Sequence record: NC_047995.1
DNA: 64,000 nucleotides
Strand: one strand, 5' to 3'
Made by a program: the position numbers and the translations under genes. Positions 2,546 through 31,232 of this stretch are shown here, piece after piece. How positions within the stretch are numbered: the stretch's first letter is position 1; each line of letters begins with the position of its first letter. Below the pieces are notes generated by a model. The model saw only the letters and a list, made by a program, of their open reading frames with translations, had not been told where the DNA came from and did not search any database.

Positions 2546-5360
2546 GAAGGGCCCAGCCTTCTCCTTACGTCCGAAACGCATTGCAGCCTTTGATGCGCTG
2601 CTCGGCGATGACGTAAAGGTGGAGACTTCTTCCGACATGGATTTCTTGTCAGATAATAGTTCAAGTGCGATTAACTTCTTGGAGAAGGGCGAGGTTAACA
2701 TCGTTGACTTGGTTGAAGGTGCGTTAGAGCAACGTACCCTCGTGCCACGCGATTTGAAGTTCGATGACAGTTCAATGCCCAAGGCGAAAAACTTCCTTGA
2801 GTGGTGTACGAGTCCCGACTTCTTAAAAGCCGAGCCGTATCTTGAACAGGCCTTGATTGGTCTACGTTTGTTCGGGGAGATTTGCGTCCGCTGTTCTCCA
2901 GACTTGCAATGGCAGCACACTGAGAACCACGAGCCGCAGGAAACTACAGCCGCAATCGAGGAACACTTGCACCTGTTACACAACGGTGTGTGCCCTCATT
3001 GCGGCGCTCGTCGTTCTGAGATGATTCGCAAGAAAGAGATGAACTTCTACAACGAGCTGGCCGTGAATGCCGGACAGCGTTGTGTGATCGCTTCAACTCC
3101 TGTTGTTACTTCTCGCGGCATCATGCCTATCGGTCATATGATGATCGGTCATTCAACACCTGGCTTTCACAAACCGCAGCGCAACTTCAATGCGCATAAC
3201 GGGCGTGAGATTAAGAACGTTCGTCAGGTGTACGTGTCAGATGAAAGCCCAACAAAGGTTGTGTCTCTCGCAAACGGCATGTGGATTGAAGCAACTCATG
3301 AGCACCCTGTGCGTACGGAGCAAGGCTTTAAGAAAGTGTCCAAGCTGCAAGCAGGCGACCGTGTTGAGATCAAACTCGGCACGAATGCGTGGGGTAAGAT
3401 TCAACGTCCTGTCAGTATCTACGATGCGGGCCTGTCAGTCCGTGAAGAAGCACTGCGCTACATTGCTGATCGCTCTCTCGCGTTCGGCGATAAGATGCAG
3501 TACGTGACCGAAGATGCAGACGCCCTACAGATGGTGTGGTCGATTCTTATCAACGCAGGTTACATGCCTCAAGTGTTGCATGACACGCGAAGCTGGAGCA
3601 TTGTGTATGACCTCACCGCTGAACCTGAGTGTCGCTCTGTTCACATCGAAGTGCAGGCTGTTGACGAAGGCACGCCGCAGGTCACATATGACTTGCAGAT
3701 GGAAGGACTCCCGCAGTTCGTAGCGTCTGGGCTTGTGCACCATAACAGCGGTAAGTCCGTTGTAGTTGCAATGATCTCGACCTACCTGACGCATAGACTG
3801 TTAATGTCGCAATCGCCTACGGGCATCCTGAGCATCGACAACACGACTGTCCTACACGGTACGTTCGTCGCACTGACTCAGAAGCAAGCGGCCGATACAC
3901 TCTGGACTCCTTACTTCAACTACATCATGGGTAGTCCCTGGTTCCAAGCGTACCACGATTTGATTCGCAAGCACGAACGCAAGTTCGGCATTGAAGTGAT
4001 GAAGATTCGTGACACGTTCGTTCTGTATGGACACAGGAACTTTGTTATCTACCCAGCGGGTCCCGATGGTCGTATTCTTCGTGGTCGAACCCGCGTACTG
4101 GCGGTGATCGATGAAGTGGCGTATTTCGATAACGACGCCCAATCCAAAAAGATCAAAGTCAGTGCTGGTGCAGTGTACGGCGCACTAGACCGTTCACTTG
4201 CGACCGTGCGAGCGAAAGAACGAAGGCAGGTGGAAGCTGGCTACGACGAGGCATTCACGGGCTACTTCTGCAACATCAGTAGCCCGGTACACGCTCGTGA
4301 TAAAATCAACGAGCTGTTGCGTATGTCCGTCGGTAGTGAGAAGCTGTTAGGCATTCATGCTCCTACGTGGAAGATGAACCCTGACATGCCACGCGACTCC
4401 GAGTTCCTTGTCGAAGCATTCAAGCGTGACCCTGTAGGTGCAGCGCGAGATTATGGCGCAGAAGCACCGTTGTCTGCTAACCCGTTCATCACGCAGCCTA
4501 CGTTTATCGCAGATGCTATACGTGAGAAGGGTCGTTCGATGTGTACCTATACGCATCACATCATTCGACACAAAGACGGTGAGCGCCAGCGCTATGGTGC
4601 TTTAGTCAAAGCAGCAACGACAACCAAAGCGTCTATCCTTGCGATTGATGCAGGCTTCTCGAATAACAGTTTCGCACTCGTAACAGGCTCACGCGGCGAT
4701 GACGGTATTATCAGTGTTGACTGTCTGGTGGAGATCGTTCCAAAGCCGGGCATCCCCCTGAACTATACCTTAATCTTCGATGAACTGCTTATACCCCTGT
4801 GTAAAGCGCGTAACGTCCGCGTAATGCTTGCTGACCAGTGGCAGTCACTCAAGTTGCTGCAAGATGCTAAATTGAAAGTGGACTCGATTGAAGAATCCGA
4901 TCAGTACAGCCTGAAATATCAGGACATGTGGACTGTGAAGACGATGTTCGAATCTACTCCGAGTCGCATCACACTGCCTCGCATGACGAACGCTAAGACG
5001 ATTATGGACACGCTGAAATACGATGGCGATGAATATCCTCAGTGCTTCGAGAACAAACCAACAGAGCACTTGATCATGCAACTCCAGACAGTGCAAGACA
5101 CTGGACGTAGCGTTATCAAGAACACAGGGGCAACCGATGACCTGTGGCGAGCAATGGCACTCATGGTCTATGGCTTCGAGTGTGGTAACTACGACGAGTA
5201 TCTGATCAAAGCGCCAGAAGTAACTATCAATCGTGACCCGAATCGTTTAGGCCGTGTAGCACACAGACTTAACTCAGGCTCAGCGTCAACAGGCCGTCCA
5301 CAACTTAGTGGTGGTCGTGTTCTTGGTTCTGCGCGTACTCGGATGATTGGCCGCAAGTAA
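2532..5360 (+). CDS. terL: terminase large subunit, intein-containing
   Basis: After intein removal Walker A reads AGQRSGKS; GRILRGRT, Walker B VIDEVAYFD, coupling motif NISSP, RNase H-like nuclease acidic residues AIDAG ... DDLWRA. Confidence 0.9.
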   Translation: MAKPKKGPAFSLRPKRIAAFDALLGDDVKVETSSDMDFLSDNSSSAINFLEKGEVNIVDLVEGALEQRTLVPRDLKFDDSSMPKAKNFLEWCTSPDFLKAEPYLEQALIGLRLFGEICVRCSPDLQWQHTENHEPQETTAAIEEHLHLLHNGVCPHCGARRSEMIRKKEMNFYNELAVNAGQRCVIASTPVVTSRGIMPIGHMMIGHSTPGFHKPQRNFNAHNGREIKNVRQVYVSDESPTKVVSLANGMWIEATHEHPVRTEQGFKKVSKLQAGDRVEIKLGTNAWGKIQRPVSIYDAGLSVREEALRYIADRSLAFGDKMQYVTEDADALQMVWSILINAGYMPQVLHDTRSWSIVYDLTAEPECRSVHIEVQAVDEGTPQVTYDLQMEGLPQFVASGLVHHNSGKSVVVAMISTYLTHRLLMSQSPTGILSIDNTTVLHGTFVALTQKQAADTLWTPYFNYIMGSPWFQAYHDLIRKHERKFGIEVMKIRDTFVLYGHRNFVIYPAGPDGRILRGRTRVLAVIDEVAYFDNDAQSKKIKVSAGAVYGALDRSLATVRAKERRQVEAGYDEAFTGYFCNISSPVHARDKINELLRMSVGSEKLLGIHAPTWKMNPDMPRDSEFLVEAFKRDPVGAARDYGAEAPLSANPFITQPTFIADAIREKGRSMCTYTHHIIRHKDGERQRYGALVKAATTTKASILAIDAGFSNNSFALVTGSRGDDGIISVDCLVEIVPKPGIPLNYTLIFDELLIPLCKARNVRVMLADQWQSLKLLQDAKLKVDSIEESDQYSLKYQDMWTVKTMFESTPSRITLPRMTNAKTIMDTLKYDGDEYPQCFENKPTEHLIMQLQTVQDTGRSVIKNTGATDDLWRAMALMVYGFECGNYDEYLIKAPEVTINRDPNRLGRVAHRLNSGSASTGRPQLSGGRVLGSARTRMIGRK
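3081..3746 (+). mobile_element. intein (222 aa, mini or degenerate) in terL Walker A
   Basis: Starts CVIASTPV, block B ATHEHPV, block F TYDLQMEG, ends VHHN followed by Ser; splicing restores GQR-SGKS. Confidence 0.9.
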
Positions 5361-9966: not shown

Positions 9967-10497
9967 ATGACGGACAAGATTACGCAGTTGGAGAAGTGGT
10001 ATGATGCAGCAAAGACGGCGTTCAAGATGGGACAACACAATCCCAATGGAAACATCGCGCTGCTGTTGAGTATTCTGGCTCGCCTGAACAAGACAGTTGA
10101 TGAAGCTGCTCCTGGTCCTGTGCGCGAACAGGCTGAGTTCGAACGCAACCAGTTCCTTGACGAGCTGGCTGCCGAAGTGAAGATGTACGAACTCATTCGC
10201 AAGCGCTTCAACAACGACCTGTACCCTGGTATTACTGTGAGCGAAGACGTGAAGGTGTACGTCGCGCTCATGTCCGATCGCCCTGGCTCTGCTGTGATGG
10301 CGATGACCTTCCTGCACCTTGCCCGTTGCTACACGCTCAAGGACATGATCATTAACTTTCTCCCGAATGGCTTTCCTGCTGAGGACGCACTTGGCCTCAC
10401 TTGGAGCATACAGAAAACAGACGCCGGAAACCTGGTGGATGATATTGATTCTGTAAATAGCCTGTATACTAAGATGTATAACTCTGGAGATAAGTAA
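9967..10497 (+). CDS. hypothetical protein
   Basis: 176 aa, GAGG RBS. Confidence 0.7.
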   Translation: MTDKITQLEKWYDAAKTAFKMGQHNPNGNIALLLSILARLNKTVDEAAPGPVREQAEFERNQFLDELAAEVKMYELIRKRFNNDLYPGITVSEDVKVYVALMSDRPGSAVMAMTFLHLARCYTLKDMIINFLPNGFPAEDALGLTWSIQKTDAGNLVDDIDSVNSLYTKMYNSGDK

Positions 10498-11090
10498 TGG
10501 ATTTATCTGCATTAGGTTACGCGCCGAAGCAGTTCCGAGTGATTCCCGTTGAGAACGGTAACCTCGTATCTGACTTCATCCACGGTAAGTTCCGCGTCAT
10601 TGGTGTTGAGTGCAACGCTCGCGGTGCTTACGGCAACCCGATTCAAAAGAGTATTGCTCGCCGCTTCCCCGAAGTCGTGAACCGCGTCAATGCCGTTGAC
10701 TACGAACACGAATTAACTATCGGTAAGACGCACATGATTCGCGTTAGCACTCAGCACCGTCGTGGTCTGTACGTTGCTAACATGCACATCGCTCGCGGCT
10801 TCGGTCTCGGTCTGAATGGTTCATCGGAGGGCGCTCACAAGCCCATCAATCGTTTCAGTGAACAACATCTGACACGCGCCTTTGATCATCTGCTGGAGCA
10901 GTGTGAGAAAGAGAACATTGCTCCAGACCGACAGATTGCTATTCAGCGTTTCTACGGCGGACTCGGCGGGGTTTCTTGGGAAGAGGTTTGTGTTGTGCTT
11001 GACGCTATCTGCGAGAAGCATCAGTTCAACATGTATGCCTATCTACCAAAGAACTACAATACTAACTACGTGCGGGGTTCCGCGCAATAA
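10497..11090 (+). CDS. macrodomain protein (Poa1p/DarG-like)
   Basis: ECNARGAYGNPIQKSIARRFP and IAIQRFYGGLGGVSWEEV match the macro consensus N..G.MG.G.A..I...FP and IA.P.IG.GLGGL.W..V. Confidence 0.7.
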   Translation: MDLSALGYAPKQFRVIPVENGNLVSDFIHGKFRVIGVECNARGAYGNPIQKSIARRFPEVVNRVNAVDYEHELTIGKTHMIRVSTQHRRGLYVANMHIARGFGLGLNGSSEGAHKPINRFSEQHLTRAFDHLLEQCEKENIAPDRQIAIQRFYGGLGGVSWEEVCVVLDAICEKHQFNMYAYLPKNYNTNYVRGSAQ

Positions 11091-11102
11091 CTCTGGGGTG
11101 TA

Positions 11103-11438
11103 TTGATGAACACAATACGCGGATTTGATTGGCTCTTTTACGGAGATGGAACCGATAGCGGCCAGCATTCAATTGCAAGTGTCGTTGTAGAAACATCGAC
11201 GAAATCAATTCAGGTAGAAGTAAAGCCAGGAGGCGCGGTACCTGTAATTCAAGCGATTCAGGACAATGACGTCCTGTACGTTCAGACCTCCGAAGGTCTA
11301 TACCGTATTCGTTATAGTTGCTCGTTCCGAACGCTGGATGCTAACGTTTTCCCTCCAAGTAAAACAGAGTTCCGCTTGAAGCTGATCGCCTGTGACTTCT
11401 TGGACGGTGTTACTACTCACGATAAACTTCTGGACTAG
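11103..11438 (+). CDS. hypothetical protein
   Basis: 111 aa ORF in operon. Confidence 0.6.
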   Translation: MMNTIRGFDWLFYGDGTDSGQHSIASVVVETSTKSIQVEVKPGGAVPVIQAIQDNDVLYVQTSEGLYRIRYSCSFRTLDANVFPPSKTEFRLKLIACDFLDGVTTHDKLLD

Positions 11439-11443
11439 CCGCT

Positions 11444-12142
11444 ATGATTACAGCAAAGAACGTTGAAAGCCGTTTGGCAAAAATAAACTATACTCGCCCT
11501 GACCCTTCACGGGAAGAGCTTGAGGAACTTGTTGGTCATGGCAAGACTCGTATTCTAAAGACCGCAGACATTAATGGCCTGTGTCCGCTGTCCAACCAAT
11601 ACTTTGAGTTCTGTCTAAAGCAAGTTGGTTCTTTCTGTACGGCATCGTACAACGCGGTTGAGATCGCAATGTGTGTGGGCATCCAACCTATCTACGTTGC
11701 TGCTGCGCTTCATCTCTACGGCGGTGACTGGGCATATCGTTTGCTCAAACTGAAACGCTTCGGTCGCCTCGATCGTGGTATTCATAGCGTGTGGGAATCA
11801 GGTGGTGCTTGGTTCTCGCTGGGTGAGTGTCGCAGTCGCATCGTAGGCTCGCAGACTGTTTCGCAGGGACAAGGCAACTTGAAGACTGCTATCCGTTTGG
11901 GTGACATGGAACTGATTCGTCAGATTGCTGCGAAGTTCCCACATCGCACCATGAGCGTACTCGCGCCTCGTATCGGACTTCTCTATACCGACCAACGTCG
12001 TGAAAAGAGTAAGCGTGACCTTGAAGCCAAGAAGAAAGCGCTCGCAGCCGAAGGTAAGAAGATGGCTGAACACGGATCGTATAGCGACCTCAGCCCTGTC
12101 TTCAACGGTTCGATAGCTAAACCTGATTACGACAGATTCTGA
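11444..12142 (+). CDS. hypothetical protein
   Basis: 232 aa ORF in operon. Confidence 0.7.
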   Translation: MITAKNVESRLAKINYTRPDPSREELEELVGHGKTRILKTADINGLCPLSNQYFEFCLKQVGSFCTASYNAVEIAMCVGIQPIYVAAALHLYGGDWAYRLLKLKRFGRLDRGIHSVWESGGAWFSLGECRSRIVGSQTVSQGQGNLKTAIRLGDMELIRQIAAKFPHRTMSVLAPRIGLLYTDQRREKSKRDLEAKKKALAAEGKKMAEHGSYSDLSPVFNGSIAKPDYDRF

Positions 12143-12574: not shown

Positions 12575-13345
12575 ATGAGCAACGTTGATCAAACAATGCC
12601 ACAAGGCCGCTGGGAATTTAATGAGCCAGTTGCTGCTGTCTTCGATAACATGCTGCAAAACTCAATTCCATCGTATGACCGTATGCGTGATCTGACCTAC
12701 CGTCTGGGTCGTCAGTTCGTAACTCCAGGTACTGCGATTGTTGATTTGGGTGCGTCACTCGGTCGTGCTATCGAACCGTTCTGTGCTGAGTTCGGCGAGT
12801 ACATGTACCATCATGCGGCAGATCGTCCTGAGCCTGATTCTGAAACAGGTAACCACTACTGCTGCTACGAAGTAGCGCCTGCCATGCTTGAGCGCCTGCG
12901 CCAAAACGAAGTGCTGGCTAAAGCGAACGCCAAAATCAGTAGCGAGTCTCTGGTCGAAGTGGACACCTTCCGATTCGACGAGCAGGTTGAATGCTCACTT
13001 ATCCTGAGTGTACTGACTCTCCAGTTCACTCCTATCGAACACCGTCAACACATCCTTGAGAAGGTCTATGACTCTCTGGAGAAAGGTGGTGCTTTCATTC
13101 TGGTTGAGAAAGTGTTGGGTGACGACAACTTCCTTGACCGTCTGCTGGTAGACACCTACTACGGCATGAAAGGCGACAACGGTTACTCGCAGGAATCTAT
13201 TGCGACTAAGCGTAAAGCCCTTGAAGGCGTACTGGTGCCTGTGAAAGCTGCATGGAACGAAGAACTGCTGCGCAAAGCTGGCTTCAACCGTGTGGAATGT
13301 TTCTACCGCGACCTGAACTTTGCTGGATGGATCGCAGTCAAATAA
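12575..13345 (+). CDS. cmoA: carboxy-S-adenosyl-L-methionine synthase (CmoA-like)
   Basis: WEFNEPVAAVFDNMLQNSIPSY (E. coli [22 protein letters not shown]), DLGASLG, TLQF, LVEK, TKRKALEGVL with the Arg equivalent to E. coli R199, C-terminal LNFAGWIAVK. Confidence 0.88.
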   Translation: MSNVDQTMPQGRWEFNEPVAAVFDNMLQNSIPSYDRMRDLTYRLGRQFVTPGTAIVDLGASLGRAIEPFCAEFGEYMYHHAADRPEPDSETGNHYCCYEVAPAMLERLRQNEVLAKANAKISSESLVEVDTFRFDEQVECSLILSVLTLQFTPIEHRQHILEKVYDSLEKGGAFILVEKVLGDDNFLDRLLVDTYYGMKGDNGYSQESIATKRKALEGVLVPVKAAWNEELLRKAGFNRVECFYRDLNFAGWIAVK

Positions 13346-13356
13346 GGTAAACCGAT

Positions 13357-14412
13357 ATGAACGTAAGTGGTGATATCTATAACATCCCTCAACCGTTCGC
13401 CATGTATTGTGGCAACTGTGAAACTCGTGCTCAGGCTAAAGTAGCTGCGGGCACAATCGAATGGGCGCGTGATAAAGTCTGCTGTGTAGTCGCAGACGAC
13501 AACGGCCTATTCCCGGACATGCCTCATGTTAACGTGGCGAGTATTCATGCAACCGATGCTGAAACTCTGGTGATTGGCTGCGCCCCTTTTGGCGGTAAGA
13601 TCGACGAGCAAATGGATAGTGCAATTCGTAGCGCTATCTATCGTGGTCGCAACATCGCTGCTGCTATGCACACGCGTCTGGCAGATAATCCTGAATACGT
13701 TGAGCTGGCCGATCGCTACAACGTCAAGCTGTATGACTTCCGTCATCGTCCTGATGCGTACCCGCTCGGTACTGGCGAGAAGCGTAACGGCATTCGTCTG
13801 CTGACTGTAGGCACTGATAGTTCTTGCGGTAAGAAGTTCACGACGCTGACTCTGCATCGTGCGCTGAAAGAACGACACGACGACACGGTGTTCTGCTCTA
13901 CTGGCCAGACTGGTTTCCTGATTAGCGACTGCGGTATCAACAACGATACGCTGGTGGCTGACTTCCTTGCAGGTGCTGCTGAGTCGCTGTCTCCTGAAGG
14001 TCCAGTTGATCGTGTGTACCTGATTGAAGGTCAAGGTGCTATCACCCACCCAGCGTACACTGGCGGTAGCATGAGCCTGATTGCTGGCTCGCAGCCTGAC
14101 TACTTCATCATGTGCCATGCGTGGGAACGTAAGACTCAGCTTGGCGTTAATCGCGTACCTAACCTGGTGTTCGAACTGAAAGCCAACATGGACGCTGCTG
14201 CAATACACGGCCTGACGCCTAAGTATCTCGGCATCAGCATCAACTTCTCTGAGTGTGATGCGACTCTGGAACAACAGGACCAGATCATGCGTGACCTTGA
14301 AATAGAGTTCGGCATGCCTGTGTTCGACCCGCTGCGCAACGTCATGGTAGTTGAAGAACTGGCGAACGCCCTCCATGCAGAAGCAATGCGTCGGAGTGCA
14401 GAGAATGGCTAA
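13357..14412 (+). CDS. DUF1611 family P-loop protein (DgcN-like)
   Basis: LLTVGTDSSCGKKFTT, FCSTGQTG, DFLAGAAE, LIEGQGAITHPAY, GSQPDYFIMCH are DUF1611 hallmarks. Confidence 0.85.
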   Translation: MNVSGDIYNIPQPFAMYCGNCETRAQAKVAAGTIEWARDKVCCVVADDNGLFPDMPHVNVASIHATDAETLVIGCAPFGGKIDEQMDSAIRSAIYRGRNIAAAMHTRLADNPEYVELADRYNVKLYDFRHRPDAYPLGTGEKRNGIRLLTVGTDSSCGKKFTTLTLHRALKERHDDTVFCSTGQTGFLISDCGINNDTLVADFLAGAAESLSPEGPVDRVYLIEGQGAITHPAYTGGSMSLIAGSQPDYFIMCHAWERKTQLGVNRVPNLVFELKANMDAAAIHGLTPKYLGISINFSECDATLEQQDQIMRDLEIEFGMPVFDPLRNVMVVEELANALHAEAMRRSAENG

Positions 14413-15274
14413 ACATCCTCTTCGCAAGCTGTTCGAACAGCACGTAAAGAAAGAGGTCAAAGCCAAAGAAGTGGCCGTTCTGCTTTCGAGCGGCCTCGAT
14501 GGTTTGGTTAGCGCACTGGCTGCGCATGATCTCGGCATGAAAGTTCACGCCTTCACTTTTCAGATGGGCGAGGAGCAGAGCTTTGACAGCAAACACGCCC
14601 GCATCGTCGCAGAGAAGATGGGTTGGTCGTTCACTCTAGTCAAGGTGCCTACGTCTGACACGGCAATCGCCAAAGGCTGGAAACTGCTTCACGCAAACTT
14701 CCGCTGTTTGAAAAAGCGTGACTTCGAATGCGCGTACCCTATGGTGTACTGCTATAAAGCAATCAAAGACGCTGGCTTGAAGTATGTGCTGTCCGGTCTG
14801 GTGGCTGACGGTTACTTCCTGTATAACCGCAACACGCACATCCAGAAAGTAAGCGGCCCGCATTCCGTCGCTGAAAAGTACCATGCGTATCGCACTGAAT
14901 ACTTCCGACCGTGGATCAAAAGCGGTAAGAAGTCTCTCGGCGTTGATGGATATAACCCGAGCGGTATGCTGCAACACGAAATGCTATGTGATCACTTCGG
15001 CCTTGTTCACGTTAATCCGTGGATGCAGCCGAAAGTATTTGATTACTTCATCAAGTACACATGGCAAGAGTTAAATATGCCTAAGCAGAAAATGCCAATA
15101 ACAACGGCTTGGGCAGATCACATCGCTATTGTCGGGCATCGCCCGCATCGCGGCTATCAAACAGAAGCTGGAGTGCCTGCGCACTTCGAACGCTTACTGG
15201 ATAATCCTGAGATCAATTTCAACGGTCGCAAGCGCATCATGGATGTGGCCCGCGATTGGTCGACGAGGACTTAA
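14405..15274 (+). CDS. asparagine-synthetase C-terminal-domain-like PP-loop ATPase (no glutaminase domain)
   Basis: PP-loop VLLSSGLDG, VLSGLVADGYF (cf. VLSGEGADELF), GLVHVNPWMQ (cf. GLE.RVPFLD); ATG 14405 overlaps the DUF1611 stop. Confidence 0.75.
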   Translation: MAKHPLRKLFEQHVKKEVKAKEVAVLLSSGLDGLVSALAAHDLGMKVHAFTFQMGEEQSFDSKHARIVAEKMGWSFTLVKVPTSDTAIAKGWKLLHANFRCLKKRDFECAYPMVYCYKAIKDAGLKYVLSGLVADGYFLYNRNTHIQKVSGPHSVAEKYHAYRTEYFRPWIKSGKKSLGVDGYNPSGMLQHEMLCDHFGLVHVNPWMQPKVFDYFIKYTWQELNMPKQKMPITTAWADHIAIVGHRPHRGYQTEAGVPAHFERLLDNPEINFNGRKRIMDVARDWSTRT

Positions 15275-15275
15275 T

Positions 15276-15890
15276 ATGTTTGTACACATCATTGACGGTG
15301 GTATTGGTGGTCAGTATGTTTTCCACCAGTTGCAGGAAGCTGGCATCAACTGTCGTATTCACTCTCCGAACAACAATCGTGTTCGGGCAGTACATGCGCC
15401 TTACCCAGCTCTTTCTATGGGACACACGGAACAGGAAATTGAGAAGCATATCGGTAGCGTGTTAGGCACGTATCGCGGCCTTTTCCTGATCAGCAGTTAT
15501 GTAGGTTCGTTGATTGCTAATCAGATGCTTGACCAGTGCGGTCAGTCTGATAACATCATCACCTGCGACGATCTCAAGTGTGGCTCGATACCTGTCGTTG
15601 CTTCATCCATTTCTGTAAACGTATATCGTAAACAGAGACAACTCGGTCGCATAGCGCATCGCCTGAAACACTTCGACACTGACCATGAGTTCATTGTCGC
15701 AGACAAGGCTGTGCGCTTCGCTGCGGGTTCGGAGTTCGATGAACAAGACGCTCGTAAGGAATTCAACAACAACGCCAAGTTCCTTTCGAGTCCGTCATTG
15801 ATTGTTGCTGCACACAAACTCGGTGTGAAGAACAGTATGTATCACAACTATGCGGGGCTGGTGCGCGAGTTCCTTGAGAAGCGCCAGTAG
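15276..15890 (+). CDS. hypothetical protein with degenerate Rossmann-like N-terminus
   Basis: MFVHIIDGGIGGQYVFHQLQEAG resembles a beta-alpha GxGxxG dinucleotide-binding start; GAGGA RBS. Confidence 0.6.
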   Translation: MFVHIIDGGIGGQYVFHQLQEAGINCRIHSPNNNRVRAVHAPYPALSMGHTEQEIEKHIGSVLGTYRGLFLISSYVGSLIANQMLDQCGQSDNIITCDDLKCGSIPVVASSISVNVYRKQRQLGRIAHRLKHFDTDHEFIVADKAVRFAAGSEFDEQDARKEFNNNAKFLSSPSLIVAAHKLGVKNSMYHNYAGLVREFLEKRQ

Positions 15891-15908: not shown

Positions 15909-16172
15909 ATGATTAATCGCTTTCAACTGAAAAAGGTTCCTACGCTTGAAGCGTGTCAGTGGAACGGGGAGAACGTCGAGGAGATGGATAAGTTCCTCGG
16001 CGGTCATGGTTATGTCAAAGGACGTTACGTTGAGATTGGCTTGTTGGATAAGTATCAAAAGCCAACGCTTGCCAACGTGTCTGTAGGCAACTATGCAGTG
16101 AAGTACGAAGACGGTTCGTTCGGAGCACTGACTGCGAGTGAGCTGATGGACAAATACGTTCTGGCTGATTGA
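15909..16172 (+). CDS. conserved phage hypothetical protein
   Basis: KKVPTLEACQWNGEN ... VGNYAVKYEDGSF pattern typical of a widespread small phage family. Confidence 0.75.
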   Translation: MINRFQLKKVPTLEACQWNGENVEEMDKFLGGHGYVKGRYVEIGLLDKYQKPTLANVSVGNYAVKYEDGSFGALTASELMDKYVLAD

Positions 16173-16179
16173 GGACAAG

Positions 16180-16635
16180 ATGAATCTGTTTTCTATTTTA
16201 AAGCAGCAGGTGAAGAAAGCGCTATCGACCGAAGCGAATCACGAACCTGAGATTCGTGCGATGTTTGACTGGCGCTACTCTGTTGAGATCAAGGGCCAGA
16301 TGTACATCGTAGGCAAGACTGGAGCAAACACTTGCTTCTACGTTGAGCCTGGTACCGAAGAGCCCGTAGCGTGTTATCCTGACGCACTGCTTGCCAAGAT
16401 TGACGAGTGGGGTGCGAGCAAGTACGTGTCATTCGCAATCTACTTCAAGCGCTTCGATAGTCCTGTTGCCGAAAACATTAAGACAATCGAAAAGGCAATG
16501 ACAGGTAAACCGAAGACCTTTAAGAAAGGTTACTTCATCTGCGGGGTCACGCCTAAAGGCAAACGTATTAAGCTGTACCGTTTGCATCAAGGCCTGTCTG
16601 GTATGCAGTGGGTTGCAGTGGAGAATAAAGCATGA
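16180..16635 (+). CDS. hypothetical protein
   Basis: 151 aa, GAGGA RBS. Confidence 0.7.
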   Translation: MNLFSILKQQVKKALSTEANHEPEIRAMFDWRYSVEIKGQMYIVGKTGANTCFYVEPGTEEPVACYPDALLAKIDEWGASKYVSFAIYFKRFDSPVAENIKTIEKAMTGKPKTFKKGYFICGVTPKGKRIKLYRLHQGLSGMQWVAVENKA

Positions 16636-16841
16636 GTAAGCGCATTCAATTTCTCTTATCGTGGAGTGCGTTTATCTCCGGCTTGTTTTTGACTTTGGTG
16701 TTCTTCGCTTTGATTGTGTTCAATGTTGTTATGGATATATCGAAGGAAGTAACCACACCGTTGTTGATCGCTCTCGTTATCTGCTTCATTAACAACATGT
16801 CCACTGCGTTCTTGATGCGAAGCAACAACTCTAAACCTTAA
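16632..16841 (+). CDS. small two-TM membrane protein
   Basis: Two hydrophobic segments; ATGA overlap. Confidence 0.7.
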   Translation: MSKRIQFLLSWSAFISGLFLTLVFFALIVFNVVMDISKEVTTPLLIALVICFINNMSTAFLMRSNNSKP

Positions 16842-16872: not shown

Positions 16873-17160
16873 ATGATTGACGACATTATTGTAGGCCACA
16901 TTTATAAATCATCTAATGGCTATCCATATAAAGTGGAAGGTCGCGCCGAACACGGACAAAACCCAGAAGACAATCGGGTGCAACTCCATAACTTGACCGA
17001 AACTCCCTTGTATACCAAAGGACATAAGTTCAGTATGCGAGAGTCCGAGTTCAAGGCAGCCTTCTCTGTGTATACAGAAGGAGAGTACCATGAACACAAC
17101 GTTAAGGCATCATCTGAAATGCCGCCACTTCGATCCTGCATTCTACCATTGCTGGGTTAG
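16873..17160 (+). CDS. DUF1653-like small protein
   Basis: GHIYKSSNGYPYKVEGRAEH ... MRESEFKAAF; AGGAG RBS. Confidence 0.55.
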   Translation: MIDDIIVGHIYKSSNGYPYKVEGRAEHGQNPEDNRVQLHNLTETPLYTKGHKFSMRESEFKAAFSVYTEGEYHEHNVKASSEMPPLRSCILPLLG

Positions 17161-17603
17161 CGAAACGCAAATGACCGTGCCGTTGTTCTCGTTTGATAGA
17201 GCAATGCGCGGTCTACAGGTCTACACACCAGATGCACCTAAGCACGATAAGAATCCGAAAGCCTGTCGTTACTTCACGCGAGCGTTCGGCGGCAAGCAGT
17301 TGGTGTGGGGATCAGAAATTAAACCTGAACGGGTCGACCGTGTTCTTAACTGAGTCTGTCTTCAAGGCGTGTGCGTTACATCGTCTTGGACTCAATGCTT
17401 GGTCCGTTCTTGGTTCAAACGTGAGCGAGTACCTGCACCACCAGCTTCGCATGTTGGGTCTACGTTTCGTCTGCTTAGGCGATAACGATAAAGCAGGGCA
17501 GGAGTTTAGTCAGACGTTTGGACTAGGCGCTGTCAGCAATGACCTTGACGAGATGCCTGATGAACAGCTACTCGATCTAACTTTACCCTTCCTGAGGAAG
17601 TAG
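17090..17603 (+). pseudogene. small primase-like TOPRIM protein split by a +1 frameshift near 17316-17318
   Basis: ORF 17090..17353 gives the N-half (MTVPLFSFDRAMRGLQVY ... RYFT ... VWGSE). The overlapping frame gives TOPRIM VFLTESVFKA ... VLGS ... LGDNDKAG ... NDLDE. Removing one A from GAAATTA fuses them. Confidence 0.7.
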
Positions 17604-18259: not shown

Positions 18260-19102
18260 ATGACAGTAATAAGTCCAATCCGTTATCAGGGCAATAAGCG
18301 CAGCCTCATTCCTATTATTCTCGAAAACACACCGTCAGTAAAAGACTGTCCACGGATGGTCGATGTGTTTGGTGGTAGCGCTACTGTCTGTGCGAACATG
18401 CCGCAGAAGTTTCGCGTATACAACGAACTTAGTCCTCAGGTATTTGATATCGTCAAGATGCTGGTGGAACAGGAGCCTAAGAAAACGTTGGGCCAAGTCA
18501 AGCGACTGGTCAAACACTGGTGCCTGACGAACAGCAACGAAGAAAACTACGATGCGTTCCGTACAGTCGTCCAGAAGAAGCGCACGGCAATCCTGCATTA
18601 CGTTGCACATCGACACGCGCACTCGAACATGCTGCGCTTCAATCAGCAAGGCGTGTACAACGTGGGCTTTGGTGATCGTGGTCTGATTGGTAAGTTCGAC
18701 GAACTCGAACACGAACTCACGTCCTTCCACCAGCACATGAAAGGCGTTCACCTGACGAACATGAAGTACGGTAAGTTGCTTGGTCGTCTCGGCAATCAAC
18801 TGGACTGCAACACGTTCTGCTACTTCGACCCGCCTTATCTGGCGAGTGGTGCAATGCAGTACGGTAAGTGGACCGAAGCTAACGAACGCAACCTGCTGGC
18901 AACGCTTGAACAACTGAACCGCTTGGGCGTACCGTGGATGTTGAGCAACGTCATAGAGCACCGAGAGTTCTCGAACGATCTGCTAAAGCGTTGGCTAAAG
19001 AAACACGCGACGACCGTGCTCTACCCAAACAAAAGTTATGCGATGAACAACGGCCAGAGTGGTTCGCATAGTACGATTGAAATTCTGGCGATGAACTACT
19101 GA
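18260..19102 (+). CDS. dam: Dam-like (D12 class) N6-adenine DNA methyltransferase
   Basis: SPIRYQGNK, DVFGGS, RFNQQGVYNVGFG, CYFDPPY, WMLSN. Confidence 0.9.
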   Translation: MTVISPIRYQGNKRSLIPIILENTPSVKDCPRMVDVFGGSATVCANMPQKFRVYNELSPQVFDIVKMLVEQEPKKTLGQVKRLVKHWCLTNSNEENYDAFRTVVQKKRTAILHYVAHRHAHSNMLRFNQQGVYNVGFGDRGLIGKFDELEHELTSFHQHMKGVHLTNMKYGKLLGRLGNQLDCNTFCYFDPPYLASGAMQYGKWTEANERNLLATLEQLNRLGVPWMLSNVIEHREFSNDLLKRWLKKHATTVLYPNKSYAMNNGQSGSHSTIEILAMNY

Positions 19103-28399: not shown

Positions 28400-29101
28400 A
28401 TGGCAAAAATTGCTAAAGCAAAGGAAGGGAAAAAGAAAAGCGCTATGAAGTTTGACTTGGGAAAACTCAAGACAGCTTCACAACTGAAAGGCGCTGACTA
28501 TAACCCGCGTTTTATTACCGACAGTCGCCTGCGAGCACTCGAAAGTTCTTTGGGTAGCTTCGGTGACCTGTCTGGTATTGTGTTCAACAACAGCGTAAAG
28601 TCTGGCGTGTTGATCTCAGGCCACCAGCGCTTGAAATCAATTGACGGTTGGAAGACTCGTATCGAGATTCAACCTGCGTCCGATAAGCACGGCACTGTTG
28701 GTCTGGGCTACATTCATGCCACGCACCCGAAGAAAGCAGAGAAGGTAATCAGCATCCCTCTGCGTGTCGTTAACTGGAACGATAAGAAGTCCGAGTATGC
28801 TGCGAACATCGCGGCGAATGCTCATGGCGGTGAGTTCGATAACAAGAAACTCGCCAAGCTGGTGGAGAAGCTGGACTTGACCACAATCAAGCCTCAGTTA
28901 CTCGGCCTTGACCCGCTGGAAATTCGCGGTCTGCAACAGAAGCTGAAAGGTCAGGCTGCCGTTGTCGATCAGGAACGTGCTGGTAAGACTACTGGTCAGA
29001 TGAACGGTAGTAGCGGTTCGTTCAAAGAGTACGGCGCTGACGATGTAGGTGAGAGCCTGAACTGCACCTGCCCGCGTTGTGGATTTAAGTTCGAGGGATA
29101 A
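28400..29101 (+). CDS. ParB/Sulfiredoxin-like N-terminal domain protein with C-terminal CxCPxC zinc motif
   Basis: ADYNPR, SLGSFG, LISGHQRL, NIAAN ... GGEFD; ends CTCPRCGFKF. Confidence 0.8.
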   Translation: MAKIAKAKEGKKKSAMKFDLGKLKTASQLKGADYNPRFITDSRLRALESSLGSFGDLSGIVFNNSVKSGVLISGHQRLKSIDGWKTRIEIQPASDKHGTVGLGYIHATHPKKAEKVISIPLRVVNWNDKKSEYAANIAANAHGGEFDNKKLAKLVEKLDLTTIKPQLLGLDPLEIRGLQQKLKGQAAVVDQERAGKTTGQMNGSSGSFKEYGADDVGESLNCTCPRCGFKFEG

Positions 29102-29102
29102 T

Positions 29103-31232
29103 ATGATCATCAAGCCGCCTACTATGAAGGAAATCAACAAGCTGGATAAACCCTGGCGTGGTATGAGTTTCTTCGCAGGTTGCGGTGGGTCTTCTACCGG
29201 TCACAAGATGGCCGGTATCAACATCCTGTTGAGTAACGAGTTCGTGGACTCTGCCCGCGAATCTTACGAAGCAAACCATCCGACCACCAAAGTGCTGCCT
29301 CATGATATCCGTCGTCTGGACCCAAGCAAGCTCATGCGTTATTGTGGCTTGGCGAAAGGCGAGCTGGATTTACTTGATGGTAGTCCTCCGTGCTTTACCG
29401 AAGACACGATCATTCATACAGCAGACGGCATGAAGTTCATCTCGGACATGAATGTCGGCGATCAAGCAATGACCTCAGTTGGTCGTTACTTCCCTGTGTA
29501 CGATACGATGGTGCGTCCATACGTCGGTACGATGCACAAGATCGAAACGCTGATTAGCACGAACAACGCAACTCCCGAGCATCCATTCTTCGTGCGTCGT
29601 AGCACTGCACCTGGCGAATATAGCGAGCCATTCTGGTGTGATGCAAAAGACGTGCAAGAAGGTGACTTAGTTGGTACTCCGCGCACGACGCCTGACATGG
29701 GCCTCGCTGTGTATGAAGATCAGCTGGCACAACTGCCGAAGCAGATTGCAGAGTGGGTAACATTCCCAGAGTTCTGGTGGATGATTGGTCACTGGTGTGA
29801 TCGTGGTTCAATTGAAACTGTTAGCGGCGTTGAAGTCGTTAGCTTTGAATCGCATTCAAGCCTTGAGAATGCGATGATTGAGCAGGCGTTTGATGCGATG
29901 AAGATCAGCAGCCTGAATCGTATTGACACGATGACAGCACAACGCAAAACGTTCCGTATCGTTATGGACGCAGAGCTGGTGCAGTTCTTACGTCGATTCG
30001 TATCTCAAGGCTACAACAAATTCTCTCGTCGTCTGCCTGCGATTATCTTCCACATCTCGCAGGAACTAAAGCAGCAATTCATTCTCGGTTGTGCTGGTCA
30101 TGACTACGTGACTGCGATGGGTGCTGGTCTGTCTATCACGTCTGACTCACGCCGCTTCCTGCTTGAGATGAACTACCTGTGCTGTTCTGCATTCAACAGA
30201 CCTCTGTTCGATGGTCTGACTTGGGGTGACGTGTACTTCGGCCATGCGATGACTCCACGTGATCGTAACAGCTCGAAGCCTCTTATCGGTTACCTGTTCC
30301 TGCAGGACGAGCACAACTTCTTCTATGAGTTCGGTCTGGACGATCCCCACCTGTGGACAGAAGTGATTGAGAACCTCGCGTATCAGGCGACCTGTGACGT
30401 GTACAACTTCTCCGTTGAGACGGACGAGACATACGTTGCTAACAGCGTGGTCGTTCACAACTGCAAAGGCTTCTCTACTGCGGGTGTGAAAGAAGAAGGC
30501 TGGGGCAAGGAAGTTAAGTACAGCGATAACAAGTATCAGCAGGTTGATGACCTGTTCGATCAGTATTGCCGTATGCTCGAAGGTATGCAGCCGAAAGTGT
30601 TCACTGCGGAAAACGTTAGCGGCCTCGTTAAAGGTGCGTCGAAAGGCTACTTCATTGAAATCATGAAGGAGTTCGACCGTCTGGGCTATTACGTGCGAGC
30701 GCCTATGCTCAATGCAGCGTGGCTTGGTGTGCCGCAATCCCGTGAGCGTATCATCTTCATGGGCGTCCGCAAAGACGTAGCGAAAGCACTCGGGTACACA
30801 ACGGCTGCTAAGGCTGTGCCTGATGTTATTCCGTGTGATAGCATGGCATTCCTTGCAGACGCTCTGCCTCACATACAGCGTTACAAGTCAACGAAGAAAG
30901 ATATCATCACCTATCTTCCTGCGATGAATGGTCCGATGCCTACGATTACTGCCGCCGATGCGATTGCGTATGAGACTGCGCGATTCTCGTCTGCTGGCTT
31001 TGTCGAAGATAACAAAGGCCACAGGCGTAAGTTGACTATCGACGAACTCAAAGTGATCTCTGGCCTGCCGTCAGACTACAAACTGAAAGGCAAGTTCGAG
31101 GAGCAGTGGGAACGTCTTGGTCGTATCTGTGTGCCTGCAATGACACACGCTGCGGCTAAGGCTCTTATCGAACACATCCTGATTCCTTATGCGAAGAAGC
31201 GTAAGAAGAAGCCAGGCGATATCTTCAAGTAG
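29103..31232 (+). CDS. C5-cytosine DNA methyltransferase-fold enzyme, probable carboxymethyltransferase, intein-containing
   Basis: Motif I FFAGCGG, motif IV GSPP|C after splicing, motif VI AENV, motif VIII QSRER, motif X LGRIC (Arg where Asn is normal, codon 31122-31124); ATG 29103 after GAGGG. Confidence 0.9.
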   Translation: MIIKPPTMKEINKLDKPWRGMSFFAGCGGSSTGHKMAGINILLSNEFVDSARESYEANHPTTKVLPHDIRRLDPSKLMRYCGLAKGELDLLDGSPPCFTEDTIIHTADGMKFISDMNVGDQAMTSVGRYFPVYDTMVRPYVGTMHKIETLISTNNATPEHPFFVRRSTAPGEYSEPFWCDAKDVQEGDLVGTPRTTPDMGLAVYEDQLAQLPKQIAEWVTFPEFWWMIGHWCDRGSIETVSGVEVVSFESHSSLENAMIEQAFDAMKISSLNRIDTMTAQRKTFRIVMDAELVQFLRRFVSQGYNKFSRRLPAIIFHISQELKQQFILGCAGHDYVTAMGAGLSITSDSRRFLLEMNYLCCSAFNRPLFDGLTWGDVYFGHAMTPRDRNSSKPLIGYLFLQDEHNFFYEFGLDDPHLWTEVIENLAYQATCDVYNFSVETDETYVANSVVVHNCKGFSTAGVKEEGWGKEVKYSDNKYQQVDDLFDQYCRMLEGMQPKVFTAENVSGLVKGASKGYFIEIMKEFDRLGYYVRAPMLNAAWLGVPQSRERIIFMGVRKDVAKALGYTTAAKAVPDVIPCDSMAFLADALPHIQRYKSTKKDIITYLPAMNGPMPTITAADAIAYETARFSSAGFVEDNKGHRRKLTIDELKVISGLPSDYKLKGKFEEQWERLGRICVPAMTHAAAKALIEHILIPYAKKRKKKPGDIFK
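29391..30461 (+). mobile_element. intein (357 aa) with degenerate LAGLIDADG region, in the MTase catalytic PC motif
   Basis: Starts CFTEDTII, block B ATPEHPF, block F VYNFSVE, ends VVHN followed by Cys; WMIGHWCDRGS and FILGCAGHD look like decayed blocks C and E. Confidence 0.92.

Follow-up and report, generated by a model that had tools for sequence, protein, structure and literature searches.

Background

The closest described relative of the system treated here is that of Synechococcus phage S-B43, for which Yang et al. (Nat Commun, Dec 2025) reported that CmoA, CmoX and CmoY together yield 5-carboxymethylcytosine (5cxmC) and its glycine amide, 5-glycylcarboxymethylcytosine (PMC12783734). 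The [M+H]+ values given there are 286.1 for the nucleoside 5cxmdC and 343.1 for its glycine amide (PMC12783734). S-B43 CmoA produces carboxy-S-adenosylmethionine (carboxy-SAM); CmoX, which is homologous to C5-methyltransferases and has Arg350 and an SPPC motif, forms 5cxmC in DNA; and the asparagine-synthetase-like SpCmoY was shown experimentally to carry out ATP-driven ligation of glycine to 5cxmC in DNA, performing both activation and ligation alone and needing no partner (PMC12783734). R350 of SpCmoX is a carboxylate-binding Arg that replaces the Asn of ordinary C5-methyltransferases (PMC12783734). The same work saw an association of ParBc with CmoX in many contigs and regards further adducts besides glycine as still to be discovered; its main text makes no mention of DUF1611 or DgcN (PMC12783734). 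Here we analyze a related locus in the Erwinia amylovora jumbo phage vB_EamM_Alexandra, using bases 1-64000 of its genome (NC_047995.1, hereafter the window), in which homologues of CmoA and CmoY enclose a gene of the DUF1611 family and a CmoX-type gene lies 13 kb away.

Phage cassettes built on 5-hydroxymethylpyrimidines offer a second comparison: in them, interchangeable tailoring enzymes add sugar, amino or acyl groups to a 5-hydroxymethyldeoxyuridine (5hmdU) or 5-hydroxymethyldeoxycytidine (5hmdC) handle. These cassettes are also taken up in the discussion of PMC12783734. A third comparison is the DgcN-DgcA pair, a D-glutamate N-acetyltransferase (EC 2.3.1.312) with an N-acetyl-D-glutamate racemase (EC 5.1.1.25). 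DgcN is an acetyl-coenzyme A (acetyl-CoA)-dependent D-glutamate N-acetyltransferase (NCBIfam NF041892; EC 2.3.1.312 as cited in PMC11747546). We propose, with a probability of about 0.7, that the Alexandra locus is the half that provides cofactor and tailoring in a DNA hypermodification system of the CmoA/CmoX/CmoY type, one whose product is an amide other than the glycine adduct. The CmoA/CmoX/CmoY core is known already; a monophyletic DUF1611 branch with MurI-fold and gp022 partners appears to be new.

Homologues of CmoA, CmoX and CmoY in phage Alexandra

The genes that carry the argument are the following.

gp017, 12575-13345, + strand: CmoA-like carboxy-SAM synthase, 256 residues
gp018, 13357-14412, + strand: DUF1611/DgcN-like protein, 351 residues
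gp019, 14405-15274, + strand: CmoY homologue of the asparagine-synthetase family without a glutaminase domain, 289 residues
gp020, 15276-15890, + strand: protein with a predicted glutamate-racemase (MurI/RacE)-like fold, 204 residues
gp045, 28400-29101, + strand: ParB-like protein preceding CmoX, with a match to PHROG 620
gp046, 29103-31232, + strand: CmoX-type DNA cytosine-C5 carboxymethyltransferase by homology, with an intein at about 29391-30461

Assignment of the Alexandra genes to the published CmoA/CmoX/CmoY-type phage system is well supported by homology, as all three enzymes are full-length homologues of their S-B43 counterparts, at 30% (CmoA), 35% (CmoX) and 33% (CmoY) identity. gp017 shares 30% identity with SpCmoA, whose activity has been shown experimentally, and aligns with E. 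coli CmoA along its full length at 32% identity (E 8e-37). A homologue of CmoB was found in none of the phage records searched, the complete Alexandra genome included, and a tRNA role for gp017 is therefore disfavored. The RefSeq label for gp017 is tRNA methyltransferase.

gp019 matches Pfam Asn_synthase (E 9e-14) through the synthetase part only (TIGR01536 positions 235-387), with no glutaminase domain, and aligns with SpCmoY across residues 14-287, essentially its full length (33% identity, E 2e-49). The PP-loop singled out in a preliminary description of the locus is in place, as SSGLDG at residues 28-33. In the CmoY tree gp019 falls into a clade (support 100/99) that is sister to SpCmoY and in which every member is DUF1611-linked, and the remaining CmoY subclades follow their own accessory genes. 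By homology, gp019 is thus a predicted CmoY-type ATP-dependent (AMP-forming) amide ligase.

gp046 matches Pfam DNA_methylase (E 1e-38) and also Intein_splicing and Hint_2. Its 357-residue intein (about 29391-30461) sits immediately before the catalytic Cys of SPPC, with borders running from SPP|CFTED to VVHN|CKGFS and canonical ends (Cys1, a C-terminal His-Asn and a +1 Cys). The protein spliced in silico has 352 residues and is 35% identical to SpCmoX (E 9e-70), with SPPC conserved at residues 94-97. In the pairwise alignment, ERLGRICVP of gp046 pairs with ERVGR350MVPP of SpCmoX, which places an Arg at the position of R350. gp046 is accordingly a putative CmoX-type carboxymethyltransferase whose intact form would need the predicted splicing of its intein.

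Alexandra therefore resembles S-B43 in having a CmoX that keeps SPPC and the carboxylate-binding Arg and a CmoY without a glutaminase domain, and it resembles the contigs of PMC12783734 in that a ParB-like gene precedes CmoX. Unlike in S-B43, the Alexandra genes are split between two loci 13 kb apart and CmoX is interrupted by an intein at the catalytic Cys; the Alexandra cassette also adds a DUF1611/DgcN-like gene, a MurI-fold gene and the gp022 family, which the S-B43 locus lacks. The preliminary description had supposed that a PP-loop enzyme beside cmoA amidates a carboxymethyl group on DNA, and the full-length homology of gp019 to SpCmoY together with the CmoX-type gene in the window bears this out; the Arg-type C5-methyltransferase on which its idea depended is encoded at 29103-31232. 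Its further view that such a pathway was undescribed has been overtaken by the publication of the CmoA/CmoX/CmoY system in December 2025 (PMC12783734).

Association of the two halves across phages

The cmoA/CmoY and CmoX/ParB halves belong together. ParB, CmoX, CmoA and CmoY lie side by side in phage PaBG of Pseudomonas and in the unrelated contigs L022, L025, L026, L037 and L038, all of which carry the same ParB-CmoX pair at 43-47% identity; gp045 itself matches the ParB-like family PHROG 620 at E 2e-31. The CmoX homologues of PaBG, L022, L025, L026 and L037 are of intein-free length (335-423 residues). The Dickeya phages JA11, JA13, JA29 and JA33 (portal 70-75% identical) are without cmoA, CmoY, gp020 and gp022, and JA11 is also without the C5-methyltransferase and its neighbor gene (PMC6143709, Table 5). 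A check of gene neighborhoods, suggested together with the original proposal, finds the same gene set recurring beside CmoX on many unrelated phage backbones.

The four genes gp017-gp020 are co-directional and tightly packed, with gaps of 11, -8 and 1 nucleotides as first reported. They had been presented as a four-gene operon; the genes do belong together, and the unit to which they belong is wider, taking in gp022, which lies beyond the interval first described, as well as the CmoX and ParB-like genes 13 kb away.

A radical SAM gene (AD1_267, Y3_272) common to phages AD1 and Y3 is absent from JA11, as are cmoA, CmoY and CmoX (PMC6143709, Table 5). This gene was not found in the last 22 kb of the Dickeya phage AD1 record; it might have been inherited along with the system as a further component.

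A phage clade of DUF1611 proteins adjoining CmoY

gp018 resembles DgcN in having both DUF1611 domains (Pfam PF07755 / PF17396; DUF1611_N E 1e-17, DUF1611_C E 8e-48), the invariant motifs of the family and a match to PDB 7XRJ at E 3e-50. 7XRJ is deposited under another name and is probably DgcN. In contrast to DgcN, gp018 has no enolase-type racemase partner, falls in a separate phage clade and sits beside CmoY. In an alignment of 19 sequences gp018 keeps all family-invariant motifs, GTDxxxGKK, TGQTG, ADFxxGAAE, EGQG and GSQPD, among them the two that had been noted before, GTDSSCGKK at residues 152-160 and EGQG at 224-227. With these motifs kept, gp018 probably retains the basic chemistry of its family, whose only characterized members use acetyl-CoA to N-acetylate D-glutamate.

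DUF1611 is restricted, among isolated phages, to Erwinia and Dickeya jumbo phages of the Alexandra type (34 records). All the phage contexts that we examined place it directly upstream of CmoY; in some cassettes an alanine racemase-like (Alr-like) gene stands between the two. The DUF1611 stop codon and CmoY start codon often overlap. These contexts comprise the Alexandra-like, pEa_SNUABM_1 and pEa_SNUABM_7 groups and the metagenomic and IMG/VR contigs L005, L007, L021, L022, L023, L025, L026, L037 and L038, which have other backbones. A compact gene order, ParB-CmoX-DUF1611-CmoY-CmoA-gp022-like, is recurrent.

A maximum-likelihood tree unites 12 phage Cmo-linked DUF1611 proteins in one clade (99/100), apart from 16 bacterial DgcA-linked proteins. 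We also scanned Joint Genome Institute (JGI) metagenomes for DUF1611 and kept 80 loci of 598 matches, which are of the bacterial DgcN type. An MR_MLE (enolase-superfamily) racemase gene lies beside DUF1611 in 52 of the 80 kept loci, as it also does in L027; none of the 80 has cmo genes beside DUF1611, and none provides a new phage context. The 64-kb window contains no MR_MLE-like (DgcA-type) gene.

Membership of DUF1611 in this variant of the system, as a real and previously unreported component, is well supported because the gene adjoins CmoY, the phage proteins form a single clade, the bacterial copies pair with MR_MLE and the CmoY subclades track their accessory genes. Of the earlier ideas about this protein, its place in the system holds, given that CmoY is its neighbor in all the phage contexts covered. 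Phages appear to have taken up a DgcN-like DUF1611 enzyme on a single occasion, after which it diversified together with CmoY.

A glutamate-racemase-like fold predicted for gp020

RefSeq annotates gp020 (HOT49_gp020) at 15129-15890, from a TTG at 15129 that makes it overlap gp019 by 146 nucleotides. All gp020 homologues have 202-216 residues and begin at a Met equivalent to the ATG at 15276, and a GAGGA ribosome-binding site lies 8 nucleotides upstream of that ATG; for both reasons we prefer the ATG at 15276, the start already chosen in the preliminary description.

An AlphaFold2 model of gp020 based on 14 close homologues had a mean predicted local distance difference test (pLDDT) score of 49, and adding 3 distant homologues raised this to 92.4, with a predicted template-modeling score (pTM) of 0.89. 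Glutamate racemases make up all of the top 10 Foldseek matches of this model in the Protein Data Bank (PDB) (E 6e-5 to 4e-3, prob 1.0, query-normalized template-modeling score (TMq) 0.53-0.62). The model thus predicts a two-domain alpha/beta glutamate-racemase-like fold, where the fourth open reading frame had been read as generically Rossmann-like. In sequence, gp020 has no Pfam or NCBIfam match, and hhalign against E. coli MurI gives nothing significant and is reliable for the N-terminal motif only, in which HIIDGGIGG of gp020 aligns with FDSGVGG of MurI. gp020 therefore resembles MurI/RacE of the Asp/Glu racemase superfamily in its model (TMq up to 0.62) and in an N-terminal D-G-G-x-G-G akin to the D-S-G-x-G-G of MurI. 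It differs from MurI in being about 50-80 residues shorter, in having no sequence-level match, in apparently carrying invariant Ser at the positions that we map to the catalytic Cys and in being known from a single jumbo-phage lineage.

This jumbo-phage lineage alone has gp020 homologues, and cmoA and CmoY always precede them. The protein may bind or epimerize an amino acid, or may use the modeled scaffold otherwise. One candidate homologue outside the lineage, gp305 of PaBG (203 residues, in the same position), found no support (hhalign probability 8%, poor alignment).

gp022 as a constant companion

Two further genes follow gp020.

gp021, 15909-16172, + strand: protein of 87 residues between gp020 and gp022, with a match to PHROG 36935
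gp022, 16180-16635, + strand: protein of 151 residues that recurs in Cmo modules, with a VGKtGANT motif

Homologues of gp022 are present in 53/53 cmoA-positive relatives in the phage collection, and also inside compact modules on other backbones, in PaBG (between CmoA and CmoY), L007, L022, L023, L025, L026, L037 and L038. gp022 is thus a more constant companion of these systems than gp018 or gp020. The family has a conserved VGKtGANT motif in its alignment; gp022 has no Pfam, NCBIfam or PDB match, and its sole PHROG match is to a family without functional annotation. A likeness of VGKtGANT to an AroH-type chorismate mutase motif was considered but has no support. PHROG 36935, the family matched by gp021, is also without functional annotation; gp021 is shared by the Erwinia, Yersinia and L009 relatives but missing where the module sits on another backbone, and whether it is part of the system is uncertain.

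Swappable cassettes in related phages

Related jumbo phages share a hot spot between cmoA and conserved downstream genes, and the inserts in it differ from phage to phage.

DUF1611, CmoY, gp020: Alexandra, AD1 and others
possible glycosyltransferase (420 residues), DUF1611, Alr-like, CmoY, gp020: pEa_SNUABM_1 group
possible glycosyltransferase, DUF1611, CmoY: pEa_SNUABM_7 group
CmoY, gp020: pEa_SNUABM_2, pEa_SNUABM_5 and L009
CmoY and a 2-oxoglutarate (2OG)-Fe(II) oxygenase, with or without gp020: Y3 (L012:5595-6233) and Yoloswag (L020:5105-5746)
CmoY, 190-residue protein, gp020: Yersinia phage fHe-Yen9-02 and L014

The Alr-like protein carries the pyridoxal phosphate (PLP)-Lys motif VVKGNFYGHG and matches both serine and alanine racemase models, and its gene is seen only between DUF1611 and CmoY. 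Between cmoA and DUF1611, a protein of 398-420 residues (L002:4016-5278 in pEa_SNUABM_1; also in L003, L007 and L021) is a possible GT-B glycosyltransferase, with weak glycosyltransferase signals in its 420-residue form (Pfam Glycos_transf_1 E 5e-4 in one copy, PDB E 0.13, BshA E 1.5e-3), and the adduct may be glycosylated in phages with this gene. Beside cmoA, L007 encodes a short 3-deoxy-D-arabino-heptulosonate 7-phosphate (DAHP) synthase that passes the TIGR00034 cut-off (10943-11806), and L022 an AroQ-type chorismate mutase (4622-5089). Both genes are consistent with a demand for prephenate, which CmoA uses as its co-substrate and whose supply these phages apparently boost. In Y3 and Yoloswag the 2OG-Fe(II) oxygenase occupies the same hot spot and follows a different CmoY subtype, which suggests an oxidative tailoring branch of the same system.

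In this arrangement the Cmo systems resemble the 5-hydroxymethylpyrimidine cassettes, with a fixed core that installs the handle and swappable tailoring genes, here DUF1611, the Alr-like gene, the possible glycosyltransferase, the 2OG-Fe(II) oxygenase and the 190-residue protein. Unlike in those cassettes, the handle is a carboxylate that derives from carboxy-SAM and is installed after replication, and the tailoring enzymes belong to other families.

Proposed mechanism and alternatives

By analogy with their homologues, for which these reactions have been shown, gp017 would convert SAM and prephenate into carboxy-SAM, gp046 would carboxymethylate cytosine C5 in phage DNA once its intein is spliced out, and gp019 would adenylate the 5cxmC carboxylate and couple an amine to it. 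The amine is probably an alpha-amino acid, because the closest characterized relative of gp019 uses glycine. From gene context, gp018, as a dedicated fourth enzyme of this variant, would most likely perform N-acyl transfer on a D-configured amino group of the amino acid so attached, in either of two ways: it could cap with acetyl an amine that is still free, as in a diamino acid, or it could carry out the coupling itself, with the carboxymethyl group serving as a substituted acetyl and the product being a close analogue of N-acetyl-D-glutamate. The predicted fold of gp020 and the Alr-like PLP enzyme of sister cassettes would point to a D-amino acid in the side chain, and gp022 would be a recurrent component. 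The end product would be an amino-acid amide of 5cxmC that differs from the glycine adduct and presumably shields phage DNA from host nucleases; we found no paper reporting restriction resistance of the DNA of these phages. For amides other than that of glycine, the calculated [M+H]+ of the nucleoside (285.096 + amine - 18.011 + 1.007) would be 285.12 with NH3, 357.14 with Ala, 373.14 with Ser, 415.15 with Glu, 400.18 with Orn (442.19 if N-acetylated), 414.20 with Lys (456.21 if N-acetylated) and 458.19 with diaminopimelate (500.20 if N-acetylated).

The final DNA base of Alexandra probably differs from the published one, because three partner proteins (gp018, gp020 and gp022) are not in the publication. 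We tentatively propose, at somewhat less than even odds, that the DUF1611 clade of phages, the MurI-fold protein with its Ser/Ser pair and the gp022 family represent three enzyme or partner families of 5cxmC hypermodification that have gone unreported. Together they would yield an undescribed 5cxmC amide that contains a D-amino acid and/or is N-acylated, and that is glycosylated further in sister phages. The specific chemistry within this proposal, a D-amino-acid-containing and possibly N-acylated amide of 5cxmC, we infer only weakly and by analogy.

Several observations weigh against this interpretation. The gp017 matches to curated CmoA models fall below their cut-offs, both for TIGR00740 (E 6e-43, 147 bits, cut-off 193) and for PRK15451 (E 3.5e-32, 112 bits, cut-off 285). 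gp018 is not a DgcN equivalog, as it scores 276.7 bits against a cut-off of 480 (NF041892). Tight spacing alone defines no operon here, and it was rejected as operon evidence, as the 13 consecutive genes gp011-gp023 are all co-directional with equally tight gaps (-4 to 41 nucleotides, apart from the -8 between gp018 and gp019), no large gap appears before the 248 nucleotides that follow gp023 at 16841, and scanning for promoters and terminators gave no signal above chance; evidence for a functional unit is for this reason taken from conservation elsewhere. No member of the gp020 family (0/17) matches Pfam even at E up to 10, and a gp020 profile search of the PDB returned no MurI match. MurI has two catalytic Cys, in the motifs ACNTA and GCTHYP. 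In gp020 the invariant S74 and S172, which follow strands 69-72 and 168-170, apparently occupy their places, judged by secondary-structure order in the model with no superposition; because only the N-terminal motif aligned, we infer this mapping. With Ser for Cys and no sequence-level racemase match, gp020 may racemize nothing. Homologues of gp020 also stand beside CmoY types without DUF1611 and are missing from the pEa_SNUABM_7 group, so that its link to the pathway rests on position. DUF1611 may not touch the DNA adduct at all, because SpCmoY ligates glycine without a partner, and a simple alpha-amino acid as the attached amine would leave no free amine for an N-acetyltransferase. The chemistry given for Alexandra and for the DUF1611-containing cassettes is predicted from sequence and context.

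The alternatives concern chiefly what DUF1611 does. It could be the coupling enzyme, with CmoY activating the 5cxmC carboxylate as an adenylate or coenzyme A thioester and the DgcN-like protein transferring it to the amine of a D-amino acid (for instance D-Glu, D-Ala or D-Ser) that the racemase-like proteins or host peptidoglycan precursor pools would provide, to give a D-aminoacyl amide of 5cxmC. The geometry of such a product would match, as DgcN yields N-acetyl-D-glutamate (EC 2.3.1.312) and the carboxymethyl group is a substituted acetyl, and the adjacency of DUF1611 and CmoY with often overlapping stop and start codons, the co-variation of their subclades and the restriction of the Alr-like racemase gene to DUF1611 cassettes would all be accommodated. 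However, SpCmoY activates and ligates alone and the gp019 clade is its sister, and an enzyme-to-enzyme handover of a DNA-bound adenylate would be awkward. We know of no asparagine-synthetase-family enzyme that forms a coenzyme A thioester, and we consider DUF1611-catalyzed coupling unlikely, if still worth carrying forward.

Slightly less probable again is that DUF1611 acts on free metabolites only and never on DNA, either preparing or protecting the amine, for example by N-alpha-acetylating a diamino acid, or removing a competing D-amino acid. The characterized family member acts on a free amino acid, and the invariant motifs of gp018 are common to the bacterial enzymes, which agrees with such a role; the final adduct would be the same as under acetyl capping, but a role on free metabolites would by itself leave the strict adjacency to CmoY unexplained.

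GTDxxxGKK resembles BioD-type P-loops. The preliminary description had accordingly likened DUF1611 to a BioD/CobQ-type ligase, and as an ATP-dependent (ADP-forming) second amide ligase it could extend the alpha-carboxylate of the attached amino acid by another amine, since ligation of an amino acid by CmoY leaves a carboxylate free and gp018 has the P-loop. To our knowledge no ligase activity occurs in the DUF1611 family. Its only characterized relatives are acetyl-CoA-dependent D-glutamate N-acetyltransferases (NF041892; EC 2.3.1.312), which speaks against a ligase role and makes a second ligation distinctly improbable.

That the genes are unrelated auxiliary metabolic genes and chance neighbors, with CmoA boosting uridine 5-oxyacetic acid (cmo5U) in tRNA beside an asparagine synthetase and a D-glutamate catabolic enzyme, would suit the equally tight spacing of 13 consecutive genes and the RefSeq annotation of gp017 as a tRNA methyltransferase, with CmoB supplied by the host, but is scarcely credible given that no phage record contains CmoB, that gp019 is a full-length CmoY homologue without a glutaminase domain, that the gene set recurs beside CmoX on many unrelated phage backbones and is jointly absent from JA11-like phages, and that the window holds no DgcA-like partner.

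Implications and neighboring genes

Published work established 5cxmC as a natural handle with one characterized amide, that of glycine; the Alexandra locus and about 12 related contexts suggest a recurrent second branch, marked by DUF1611 and often joined by genes for racemase-like proteins, for prephenate supply and for a possible glycosyltransferase. If our proposal is right, the phage DUF1611 protein would be the first of its family to act on, or for, a nucleic-acid substrate, giving a poorly understood family a second biochemical context and providing candidate new enzymes for DNA functionalization; the locus would be a route to new DNA bases. Cassettes of at least 6 types replace one another at a single syntenic position in Erwinia and Dickeya jumbo phages, a natural series of swaps that could link cassette content to adduct chemistry and restriction resistance.

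Other genes of the window are of separate interest. A Dam-type N6-adenine methyltransferase with a DPPY motif (18260-19102; MethyltransfD12 in relatives) is encoded 2 kb downstream, and from its sequence the phage probably carries adenine methylation besides the cytosine adduct. gp013 (10497-11090) has a weak macro-domain match, and its Y3 and JA11 orthologues are annotated as O-acetyl-ADP-ribose deacetylase; it is probably unrelated to the Cmo system, because it is conserved even in phages without that system. At 17090-17603, a small primase-like protein is annotated as two overlapping coding sequences (gp024 and gp025) and corresponds to a single 123-residue gene in some relatives, so this pair may be a frameshift or a split gene.

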